Shown in pieces: positions 36,426-38,928 of a stretch of DNA of 64,000 nucleotides. The position numbers and the translations under genes were made by a program. Below the pieces are notes generated by a model, which saw only the letters and a program-made list of their open reading frames with translations, was not told where the DNA came from and ran no database searches. The stretch spans positions 682,001 to 746,000 of the forward strand of contig CBFDEM010000035.1 of assembly GCA_965603825.1 (NCBI GenBank), written 5' to 3'. Positions within the stretch are counted from its first letter, which is position 1, and each line of letters begins with the position of its first letter. The DNA comes from Blepharisma stoltei ATCC 30299. Its lineage: Eukaryota; Protista; Ciliophora.

Positions 36426-37430
36426 ATGGAAGAAGAGAAAGAAGCATTAGAGAGCATAAAAGCATTATTCAAGGACGCCTTTATCAGGAACAGCTACTTA
36501 GATGATGAAAGCGTCACCAATGAAGAGCTACTAACCCTAGAGGACCTTTCACCTCTCGAAGTATATGAAAATTTAAAAGATCTCATAACAAATCTGCTTT
36601 TGTTTAAGGAAAACGTCATAAAATCCAACACTGAAACCACAAGCTTAATTAAACGCACAGAACAATTCGAAAATATGCTGCAGAAGCTGGAAGGCGAAGT
36701 CCGGGCTCACATAAGGACCGAGCAGCAATTGAAACTTCACATTGAAACGTGCCAATGCAAAATTGACGAGCTGGAAAGAAAAAGCTTAAAAGACCGCCAG
36801 CTTATTGAAACACAAACACAAGATATCGAGCAAAAAGCACAACAAATAGAAAAACTTAGAAAAGAAAAACCTATTTCTTCAGATGATGCCAGAATCAGGT
36901 CAAAAGATATTGAAGACAAATACAAAGACGAAATTTCGAAAATTGCTACACAGAGGAAACTCTCTTTACTTCATGGAGGGAGTGAGCTATTGAAGCCTAA
37001 TAAGGAAAAAGTGGCTTCAAAGATAAAAAACACACATGAGAGAAGTGAAAAATATGCGTATTTAAGATCACTTCTCGACCAAAAAAGCAAAGAATGCGAT
37101 CAACTAAGAAAAGATTACGAAAATTCTAACGAAAAAATTAACGACATTCGAGAGCAGCACAAGTCTAAAAACCCAATCAGTATGCTTCACCCAAAATTCA
37201 AATCAATGAGCTCAAGACATCCTGGATCTGGAGGAAAACTCAGTCGAAACTCCTCCACAAAAACAATGTGCGAAGTAATTGATTTATTTAAAAAATCAGA
37301 CTCAGCGCCTTTTTTTAAAAAGGAAACCCAGGATAATTTGAACTCTGCAAGAAAAAAGCGGAAAGAAGGCAAGCACGCAAGGAGTAACTCTGATAACTTC
37401 AAAGCTATGTTAATCGCTAAAGAAAACTAA
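36426..37430 (+). CDS. Coiled-coil hypothetical protein
   Basis: 334-codon ORF; FENMLQKLEGEVRAHIRTEQQLKLHIE heptad segment. Confidence 0.75.
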   Translation: MEEEKEALESIKALFKDAFIRNSYLDDESVTNEELLTLEDLSPLEVYENLKDLITNLLLFKENVIKSNTETTSLIKRTEQFENMLQKLEGEVRAHIRTEQQLKLHIETCQCKIDELERKSLKDRQLIETQTQDIEQKAQQIEKLRKEKPISSDDARIRSKDIEDKYKDEISKIATQRKLSLLHGGSELLKPNKEKVASKIKNTHERSEKYAYLRSLLDQKSKECDQLRKDYENSNEKINDIREQHKSKNPISMLHPKFKSMSSRHPGSGGKLSRNSSTKTMCEVIDLFKKSDSAPFFKKETQDNLNSARKKRKEGKHARSNSDNFKAMLIAKEN

Positions 37431-37457
37431 ATATACATAATTGTAAATTTAATTAAT

Positions 37458-37508
37458 CAGCCCTCTCCAACTTTGCTAGGATTTAAGCAAAGTCTTCACA
37501 TTTGGCTG
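37458..37508 (-). promoter_or_regulatory. SECIS element (type I-like) in the 3'UTR of the HMG-SelW gene
   Basis: Minus strand CAGCC-AAAT-G-TGAA-GACTTTGCT-TAAATCCT-AGCAAAGTT-GGAG-AG-GGCTG: 5-bp helix I, internal loop, UGA/GA core, 9-bp helix II, apical AAA. Confidence 0.82.
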
Positions 37509-37513
37509 GGGGT

Positions 37514-38245
37514 TTAAGGGAAATAAGGTTTTACAGCTTCTATCAGATCTGTGAGGGTCAAATAAGTGCTGCTTTTGTGATAAACGTCATTTTTCTCAGA
37601 ACCAATTTGTACTTGTACGTCAATTTCTCTTGATTTTCTGCTTTGCACTATAACTTGATCGCTTTTTAAATCAAGATTATTTATTAAAGACTTTGCCACT
37701 CTTTCTGAATTTCTTTTATATCCTCAAGATCCACATAAATACACAAAAACTTTTTTACTAGCAGCATTATCTTCACTTTTAATTTTTTCTTTTGGTTTTT
37801 CATCTTTTGTTTCTTCGGTTTTTGAAGGGACTTTTACATTTCTCTTCCTTTCTGGATTTTCAACTGGGGTTTTTGATCTTTTTTTATTATTTTTTGTTTC
37901 TTCCCCATCATCAATATATGCACTATCATTGCTTTTTGCCCCACAACTTAATGTAAAATAACCATCCCGCTCAAGTTCGGCAAGCTGGGACTTGTATCTT
38001 TTTGTATCATTTTCATGCTGTTTTTCAAAGCAGGACTTTTCTTCTTCAGAAAATTCCTTCCATCTCTTTTTTCCAATTTGACTAAGCTGTTTTAAAGTTA
38101 ATTTTTTGCCATCTTCTATAGGCTGAGTTTTGAGGTCTTCAATGAAGAACTGGTATGAGGACAAAGGCTTTCGAGGGTAAAGCTTATTTTCTTGTTTATC
38201 ATAAATACAGTCACTTGGAATTGATCTCTTTCTCCGTTTCTTCAT
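37514..38245 (-). CDS. HMG-box / SelW-like (Rdx) fusion, candidate selenoprotein (243 aa; TGA at 37724-37726 = Sec174)
   Basis: NLS-like MKKRRKRS; HMG box PRKPLSSYQFF..KRWKEFSEEEKSCFEKQHENDTKRY. C-terminal VFVYLCGS[TGA]GYKRNSERVAKSL matches SelW VRVVYCGAUGYK. SECIS-like hairpin in the 3'UTR. Confidence 0.85.
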
Positions 38246-38466
38246 TTTAAATGGGCGGGCTTAATAAATAATTATATTGATTTCATTATAATAGAAAATG
38301 TAATTTATAAGTCCAATATTTTAATTGCAATAATCCAAATTAGCTTAATTAAAACTGCTTATTACTTAAAAATCTATATTATCATTCCAGCTCTATAAAT
38401 AAGCCCGATATATTTTCATAAATAATTTTAATCTTTTATCAAGCATTATGAATCTGAAATTCTTAT

Positions 38467-38928
38467 TTAGGATTGGTTTGCGATATCTTCAAAGTTTTGT
38501 CCACCGACTAAATCCGGCACTTCTTCTTCTCCACCTTCTTTAGCTCCAGCTTGAACTAGCTCTTTTAGGACGTCTAGGTTTTTAGGCCCTAATTGAGTAA
38601 TAATTCCTGGCATCAGATCTTTAATAGTTTTCACTTCGCCTGCTCCTGAAACCACAAAGAAATTGTCTTTTATGTTAGCAGTCACTTGTGGGTTTACAAA
38701 ATGAAGCACAGTGTTGTCGTCTTTAAAGAAATTGACTTCTTCTATTGCTGGCAATGGCTGCACTCCGAGTTTTGATATAGAAGATCGTAATTTCTTGTCA
38801 TCTACCATAGTGGTTTTGTGAGGAACTTTGTTCTTGCGCTTCATTGAGCCTTTTCCACCGATTCTTGCGGATTCGCCAAACTTAGCTGCAAGTTTCGCAC
38901 GAGCTTGAAGGACTTCTGGGTCTTCCAT
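38467..38928 (-). CDS. BTF3: Nascent polypeptide-associated complex beta subunit
   Basis: RIGGKGSMKRK, DDKKL, IEEVNFFKDD..HFVNP, MPGIITQLGP, VPDLV..NFE. Confidence 0.95.
   Translation of the reverse strand: MEDPEVLQARAKLAAKFGESARIGGKGSMKRKNKVPHKTTMVDDKKLRSSISKLGVQPLPAIEEVNFFKDDNTVLHFVNPQVTANIKDNFFVVSGAGEVKTIKDLMPGIITQLGPKNLDVLKELVQAGAKEGGEEEVPDLVGGQNFEDIANQS

Follow-up and report, generated by a model that had tools for sequence, protein, structure and literature searches.

A single gene of Blepharisma stoltei ATCC 30299 probably joins, in one frame, an HMGB-type box with an NLS-like KKRRKR start, a disordered linker and a SelW-like Cys171-x-x-Sec174 domain whose selenocysteine would be decoded through a SECIS element, and its domains suggest a redox role in the nucleus. 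The gene lies within a window of 64,000 nucleotides, by which we mean the whole stretch of DNA that was analysed (contig CBFDEM010000035.1, positions 682,001 to 746,000 of the forward strand), and its features are collected in Table 1. The 243-codon frame has one interruption, a single TGA at codon 174 inside VFVYLCGS-TGA-GYK. A public database protein of 243 aa (P0001) is identical to the product and has W written at codon 174.

An earlier note on this DNA had read an NLS-like start, an HMG box, a charged linker and an Rdx-like domain of about 80 residues in one frame, and this reading was borne out, the four parts all being present in the minus-strand ORF 38245..37514. The bounds it gave for the C-terminal domain, 165-243, were correct to within a few residues, the model placing the domain at 161-243. 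The TGA was absent from that note, and it is because of the TGA in the motif that the domain is called SelW-like here.

Table 1. Features of the HMG-box/SelW-like gene, in positions of the window
Feature	Position	Strand	Basis or remark
Complete CDS, 243 codons and TAA stop, without intron	37514..38245	minus	ATG at 38245, TAA at 37516-37514
Basic N-terminal KKRRKR, residues 2-7, monopartite and NLS-like	38225..38242	minus	Read from sequence
HMG box, residues 24-90, HMGB/NHP6 type	37976..38176	minus	Pfam PF00505 and PDB sequence matches
Lysine-rich charged linker, residues 95-160	37766..37963	minus	Predicted disordered, pLDDT 31-39
Rdx/SelW-like thioredoxin-fold domain, residues 161-243	37517..37765	minus	Model, Foldseek, VIA and paralog matches
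Cys171-Gly-Ser-Sec174 motif, predicted Sec codon TGA 37724-37726	37724..37735	minus	TGA in 6 of 6 distinct family genes
SECIS kink-turn hairpin (putative), 3'UTR	37458..37508	minus	Folding energy, recurrence in relatives and covariation
Extent of gene-sized contigs from public runs (probably RNA)	37432..38257	minus	Whole gene and SECIS in one piece

Parts of the protein and their transcript

The protein opens with MKKRRKRS..., and its KKRRKR cluster looks like a nuclear localisation signal, a function suggested by analogy with the RKRK of SelH (PMC10650576). The Pfam profile HMG_box (PF00505) scores 33.6 bits (cut-off 25.4) in the region behind it, over profile positions 1-67 of 69, and 32.7 bits on P0001. 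In phmmer comparisons with the PDB, the box matched the HMG protein 2mrc (E 4.8e-7), the PMS1 HMG box (5e-7), NHP1 (2.7e-6), NHP6A (1.7e-5), and HMGB1 and TFAM (both about 5e-4); judged by these sequence matches, the solved boxes that it resembles are of the non-sequence-specific (HMGB/NHP6) type. A single-sequence model gives the box helices at 30-40, 51-64 and 67-93 with low pLDDT. The linker that follows (about residues 95-160) is K/E-rich, was modelled with the low pLDDT listed in Table 1, and holds two further basic clusters, KKRSK and RKRNVK.

For the C-terminal domain, a fold comparison with SelW had been named in the earlier note as the check to be made, and a thioredoxin-like fold was indeed found. 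Residues 161-243 have a pLDDT of 70-85 in the single-sequence model, with the order b1-a1-b2-b3-b4-a2, and with a family alignment of 10 rows the domain (83 residues, built with W at position 174) reached a pLDDT of 86 and a pTM of 0.74. The first 12 rows of a Foldseek search against the PDB were all SelW-related (Rdx) chains (3dex, 2obk, 2p0g, 2oka and 2fa8; TM 0.62-0.73), the top rows having an rmsd of about 3 Å over 81 columns, and mouse SelW (2npb) had a TM of 0.60. A VIA scan of 48,161 chains placed 2fa8 first (Z 8.8, rmsd 2.6 over 78 residues) as the sole chain with a Z of at least 8, mouse SelW third (Z 7.1, 20% identity) and ordinary thioredoxins at about 6, Z-scores which, like the E-values of the fold matches, are moderate only, as is usual for a thioredoxin-like domain of about 84 residues. 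Atlas look-ups of the domain include SelT, SelW and SelH clusters. The motif C171-G-S-(TGA)174 stands directly after the strand 164-171 and before the helix 176-191, and this place between b1 and a1 is where Rdx proteins have CxxC or CxxU.

The Rdx-like identity proposed for the domain therefore has two sides: it holds by fold and by the placement of CxxU, and it does not hold by the Pfam Rdx (PF10262) and TIGR02174 profiles, both of which stayed below their cut-offs. Neither profile matched P0001 or its C-terminal part, and the locus was absent from a six-frame genome scan for Rdx. In the paralog P0003, Rdx was the top match with 12.2 bits (cut-off 22.6) and TIGR02174 reached 15.7 bits (cut-off 34.2), both sub-threshold scores that are lowered because the searched sequences have W in place of Sec. 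The piece after the TGA, taken alone, matched nothing in Pfam or the PDB sequences, and residues 150-243 of P0001 had no match among the PDB sequences. The family profile (alignment A4) found nothing relevant there and did not match SelW, and hhalign detected no similarity between the SelW-like family and the Pfam-positive Rdx domains of the genome. As modelled, the domain is of the Rdx/SelW type by fold and motif, while by sequence profile it falls outside formal membership.

Public sequencing runs bear on the question of whether these parts are transcribed together. Logan contigs from four runs of one study were compared with positions 37200-38600; that these runs are RNA is a guess, and their contigs amount to 22-33 Mb, about half the genome size. 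Record 3 of run X1 covers 37432-38250 and record 5 of run X2 covers 37445-38257, with lengths of 813-826 nt and without joints. In two of the four runs one contig alone reaches from the box through the linker and the redox domain to the SECIS, and contigs are present in all four. The neighbouring genes are on separate contigs with depths about 100-fold different, and a gap of zero depth lies at 38281-38421. This is the pattern that transcripts give. Transcripts ending before the C-terminal domain, which the earlier note had said would speak against its reading, were not what was found, since contigs of these probable RNA runs span both linker and domain. An MMETSP transcript ORF (P0002), which is 90% identical in a comparison of 172 residues, contains the same HMG half and a largely conserved linker and ends exactly after ...YLCGS. 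It is called 'complete' under the standard code at this same place, so that a stop-type codon stands there in a second transcriptome.

Two smaller observations concern the same contigs. Runs X3 and X4 each have two contig variants at 37934-38049, the end of the HMG box and the start of the linker, with 5 differences and similar depth, and these may be alleles or strain variants. The convergent upstream gene (plus strand, stop 37428-37430) has a transcript-like contig end only about 14-27 nt from that of the HMG-Rdx gene (window 37418-37445), and the spacer between the two is extremely compact.

Codon 174 and the SECIS element

UGA is by default a Trp codon in this genome, because long frames contain in-frame TGA and because TGA and TGG are exchanged at Trp columns. 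Nearly all of the long frames of the window are closed by TAA, frames of up to 1242 codons hold in-frame TGA, and the TGG:TGA count in the long frames is 119:62. Paralogous genes with conserved Trp columns (H-x-W-C-T, K-W-P and K-P-W-F) have TGG there in part of the copies and TGA in the rest. The copies L006, L007 and L004, set against L002, L008, L009 and L003, are direct in-genome evidence that UGA is read as Trp.

Despite this use of UGA elsewhere, the conserved TGA, the shared SECIS and the Sec machinery point to selenocysteine as the predicted residue at codon 174. The motif column has TGA in 6 of the 6 distinct family genes with DNA and TGG in none of them, and the three Blepharisma family genes use TGG for their remaining Trp codons. 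The Sec machinery that was looked for (tRNA-Sec, SepSecS and SelD) is present in the genome: a tRNA-Sec(UCA) scored 75.6 bits and was confirmed by ARAGORN, SepSecS scored 423 bits and SelD 213.9 bits. A Blepharisma tRNA-Sec is also mentioned in a 2023 preprint. That one UGA can stand for two amino acids, the choice being resolved by a SECIS, is already known in ciliates, with Cys and Sec in Euplotes and Trp, stop and Sec in Condylostoma and Parduczia (PMC4967479). It is possible that Trp-tRNA competes at UGA-174, and Sec and Trp forms of the protein may then occur side by side.

The putative SECIS lies 8-58 nt past the TAA stop. Its helix I pairs 37504-37508 with 37458-37462, its core sets UGAA (37495-37498) opposite GGAG (37465-37468), its helix II has 9 bp and its apical loop is UAAAUCCU (37478-37485); the MFE is -19.2 kcal/mol, with a z of -3.3. 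The same hairpin occurs in two stand-alone paralogs, in three metagenomic relatives and in a Sec-containing glutathione peroxidase gene (L042), starting 10-25 nt after the stops, and from its 5' side it consists of (A/G)UGA-A/U, 9-10 bp of helix, a loop with (U)AAA at its start, and (G/U)GAG. In an alignment of the seven elements to a covariance model, the AAA loop was shared, and the pairs U.G and tandem G.A/A.G were invariant. Both-sided changes were seen in 9 of 13 pairs, a count that leans towards structure because the alignment was fitted to the model. The covariation was 0.824 against 0.255 in shuffles (0 of 500 reaching the observed value) and 0.07-0.27 in slid registers. Of the glutathione peroxidase loci, L042 (G000:C62:663039-663362, minus) has TGA at the catalytic NVAxxUG, where the three other copies with the motif located have TGT or TGC, and its 3'UTR contains the same UGAA...AAA...GGAG hairpin.

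Between 37300 and 37800 the Rfam model SECIS_1 (RF00031) matched nothing, even with E-values of up to 10 allowed. Over the whole genome its best score was 23.1 bits against a gathering threshold of 35, and neither the window element nor that of the Sec-GPx gene was listed. The published core consensus is UGAN/KGAW (PMC3753652), and the window element deviates in having G as the last core base, where the consensus has A/U; the base preceding UGA is also a G. We read the miss by SECIS_1 as a lineage-specific flavour of SECIS and not as counter-evidence to the element. A SECIS model made from three sequences found only the three family genes at good E-values when run against the genome; four weak extra matches (L033-L036) were dropped because no plausible selenoprotein lies upstream of them. 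As a separate observation, none of the UGAA/(G/U)GAG elements of the Sec-GPx and SelW-like genes exceeds 23 bits in SECIS_1, so standard finders may under-call the selenoproteome of this genome.

Proposed function, alternatives and comparison with known systems

We propose that the SECIS 3' of the TAA would recruit the Sec machinery, leading UGA-174 to be read as selenocysteine, and that the basic clusters of the protein would direct its import into the (macro)nucleus. There the HMGB-type box, binding without regard to sequence, could park it on chromatin and on DNA that is bent or distorted, and the flexible linker would bring oxidised targets or neighbouring chromatin proteins within range of the CxxU domain. 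The selenol/thiol pair might work as a thiol-disulfide or peroxide-reducing oxidoreductase, or as a redox sensor, and its selenenylsulfide/selenol cycle could be recycled by thioredoxin or glutathione. Such a protein would be the functional counterpart of animal SelH, with an HMG box replacing the AT-hook. The redox-sensing or redox-acting chromatin protein that the earlier note had suggested is thereby supported in part, as to its domains, its motif and the means of reading Sec. Blepharisma carries the photosensitising pigment blepharismin, and protecting or sensing the macronuclear genome in a cell with such a pigment is a candidate role.

The same fusion could also be made with UGA-174 read as Trp, which would leave a redox-dead or single-Cys Rdx-like module with a binding or structural role on an HMG protein. 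UGA is a common Trp codon in the genome, the public annotation P0001 carries W at 174 and the 3'UTR element goes unrecognised by SECIS_1, all of which would suit a Trp codon; however, TGA and never TGG occupies the exact U position of CxxU in the six family genes, a covarying hairpin is common to the SelW-like genes and a genuine Sec-GPx, and tRNA-Sec, SepSecS and SelD are at hand, so that we regard Trp at this place as improbable. To our knowledge there is no precedent in Rdx proteins for a bulky Trp in the CxxU turn. There is likewise only a small chance, in our estimate, that a genuine Sec-containing fusion acts outside the nucleus, for example in the mitochondrial nucleoid in the manner of the HMG-box proteins TFAM and Abf2. 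The box matches both of these among the PDB sequences and the N-terminus is strongly basic, but the closest PDB matches are nuclear NHP6/HMGB-type boxes. The acidic residues within 12 of the basic start and the clusters KKRSK and RKRNVK also suggest, as far as sequence can tell, that NLSs fit better than a presequence.

It would be more surprising still if the fusion were an artefact, in which an HMG gene ending at UGA and an adjacent small SelW-like gene, or a mis-assembly, had been read as one frame. Stand-alone SelW-like genes exist and the MMETSP ORF call does end at codon 173, yet UGA is no stop in this genome and the Rdx domain is itself split by the TGA. The C-terminal domain is not a separate gene because its b1 strand and Cys precede the TGA and no ATG follows it, which makes a start after the TGA impossible. 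Contigs from the four runs of the one study map to the locus, and in two runs one contig spans the whole unit; we therefore give the artefact hardly any credence.

Read as a nuclear selenoprotein with a fused Rdx-like domain, the product can be set beside SelH, which PMC10650576 describes, citing Novoselov 2007 and Panee 2007, as a nucleolar 'redox-sensing HMG-family DNA-binding protein' and, as the nuclear Rdx member, with an RKRK signal and an AT-hook. Compared with this description of SelH, the Blepharisma protein has in common a small CxxU thioredoxin-like domain, an N-terminal basic signal (KKRRKR for RKRK) and a DNA-binding element. The two differ in that SelH has a size of 14 kDa and an AT-hook of the HMGA type, whereas the Blepharisma protein has an HMGB-type box and a linker of about 65 residues. 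The R-G-R-P core of an AT-hook is found nowhere in the 243 residues, the HMG box being in its place. An Rdx selenoprotein tethered to DNA is thus not a new idea, SelH being one, but its implementation with an HMG box appears to be new.

With SelW and the bacterial SelW-like proteins (Rdx, PF10262) the domain shares the order b1-a1-b2-b3-b4-a2 and a CxxU between b1 and a1 that is followed by G-Y-K; the motif of mouse SelW is CGAUGYK. SelW itself has about 87 aa and is cytosolic and stand-alone, whereas here the domain makes up the C-terminal third of a DNA-binding protein. The N-terminal half resembles HMGB and NHP6A proteins in its single HMG box, with P-R-K-P-L-S-x-Y and the W and RY positions, and in its basic flank and charged tail, and we know of no such protein that carries a redox domain or selenocysteine.

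The biochemical targets of SelW, SelH, SelT and SelV are poorly defined, and what is held about the action of SelH on DNA comes from few studies. A natural fusion of a SelW-like CxxU domain to an architectural DNA-binding module would give independent 'Rosetta-stone' evidence for a chromatin job of the fold. The gene would also be an example of how annotation with UGA as Trp can hide selenoproteins, the public protein having W at its active site and its SECIS being missed by the Rfam model.

Relatives and origin of the fusion

Two stand-alone paralogs, L020 and L022 (E 1e-5 and 2e-3), came to light in a six-frame genome search and are 30-33% identical to residues 157-242. Each is 86 aa long and reads MESKKVRVWICGS-TGA-GYW..., with TGG for the remaining Trp codons, and their C-terminal tail may resemble that of SelH. 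An exhaustive profile search returned 10 matches, of which 8 are small relatives or fragments; P0010 and P0011 were dropped as repeat noise. In the DNA of the small metagenomic relatives the motif is C/U-G-x-TGA-G. The stand-alone paralogs (L020 and L022, P0003) and the metagenomic relatives P0004, P0008 and L050 are like the fused domain in their CG(S/G)-TGA-G motif and in having the same SECIS, and they differ from the window gene in being without an HMG box. The five further family members whose DNA was read all stand alone, with 82-87 aa, stops just upstream of the Met and no HMG box.

A second HMG-Rdx fusion was found neither in word searches, nor in the exhaustive profile search, nor in a metagenome scan with P0001. 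A word search with the C-terminal domain alone yielded no candidates, and the region-restricted search returned only P0001 itself. The literature search brought up no combination of an HMG box with Rdx or SelW, and on Blepharisma selenoproteins it gave passing remarks only. That the earlier note knew of no described HMG-Rdx fusion agrees with these sequence and literature searches. The window gene is the only one shown to be fused; P0002 shares its HMG half and its end codon.

It had also been held that Rdx domains are normally stand-alone. This is so for the five other SelW-like relatives with DNA and is not so for the Pfam-positive CxxC Rdx domains of the genome (L001-L009; C46, C58, C19, C12, C10 and C3), all of which open proteins of 400 to more than 690 aa. 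An Rdx domain that is part of a larger protein is thus no rarity in this genome. These long proteins have the pattern EHCxxC...GAFEV...SKL..KWP, and some also have NLS-like basic tracts, a beta-rich domain conserved at the C-terminus, and long tails that are acidic or repetitive.

The fusion of the SelW-like domain with the HMG box probably arose in the Blepharisma lineage, since each of the other members for which there is DNA stands alone and has about 85 aa. It is quite possible, if somewhat short of probable, that the gene encodes the first selenoprotein with an HMG box, a chromatin-tethered selenoenzyme whose evolution from an HMGB-type box and a SelW-like domain was independent of animal SelH, in a genome where UGA otherwise means Trp. 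If this is true, placing an Rdx selenol on DNA would be a recurrent evolutionary solution, and the HMG-Rdx protein would offer a simple handle for finding the substrates of nuclear Rdx proteins.

Among the metagenomic relatives, P0008 (L049 429-677) is like the fused domain, with a b4-a2 loop 4 residues shorter and an H-K motif. A P0008-like short-loop subtype, rather than the subtype of L020 and L022, may have given rise to the fused domain. Two metagenome contigs (L047 116-379 and L048 151-414) have two TGA codons in the active-site motif, I-I-TGA-G-G-TGA-G-F, and this relative could have either a UxxU pair or Trp and Sec within one motif.
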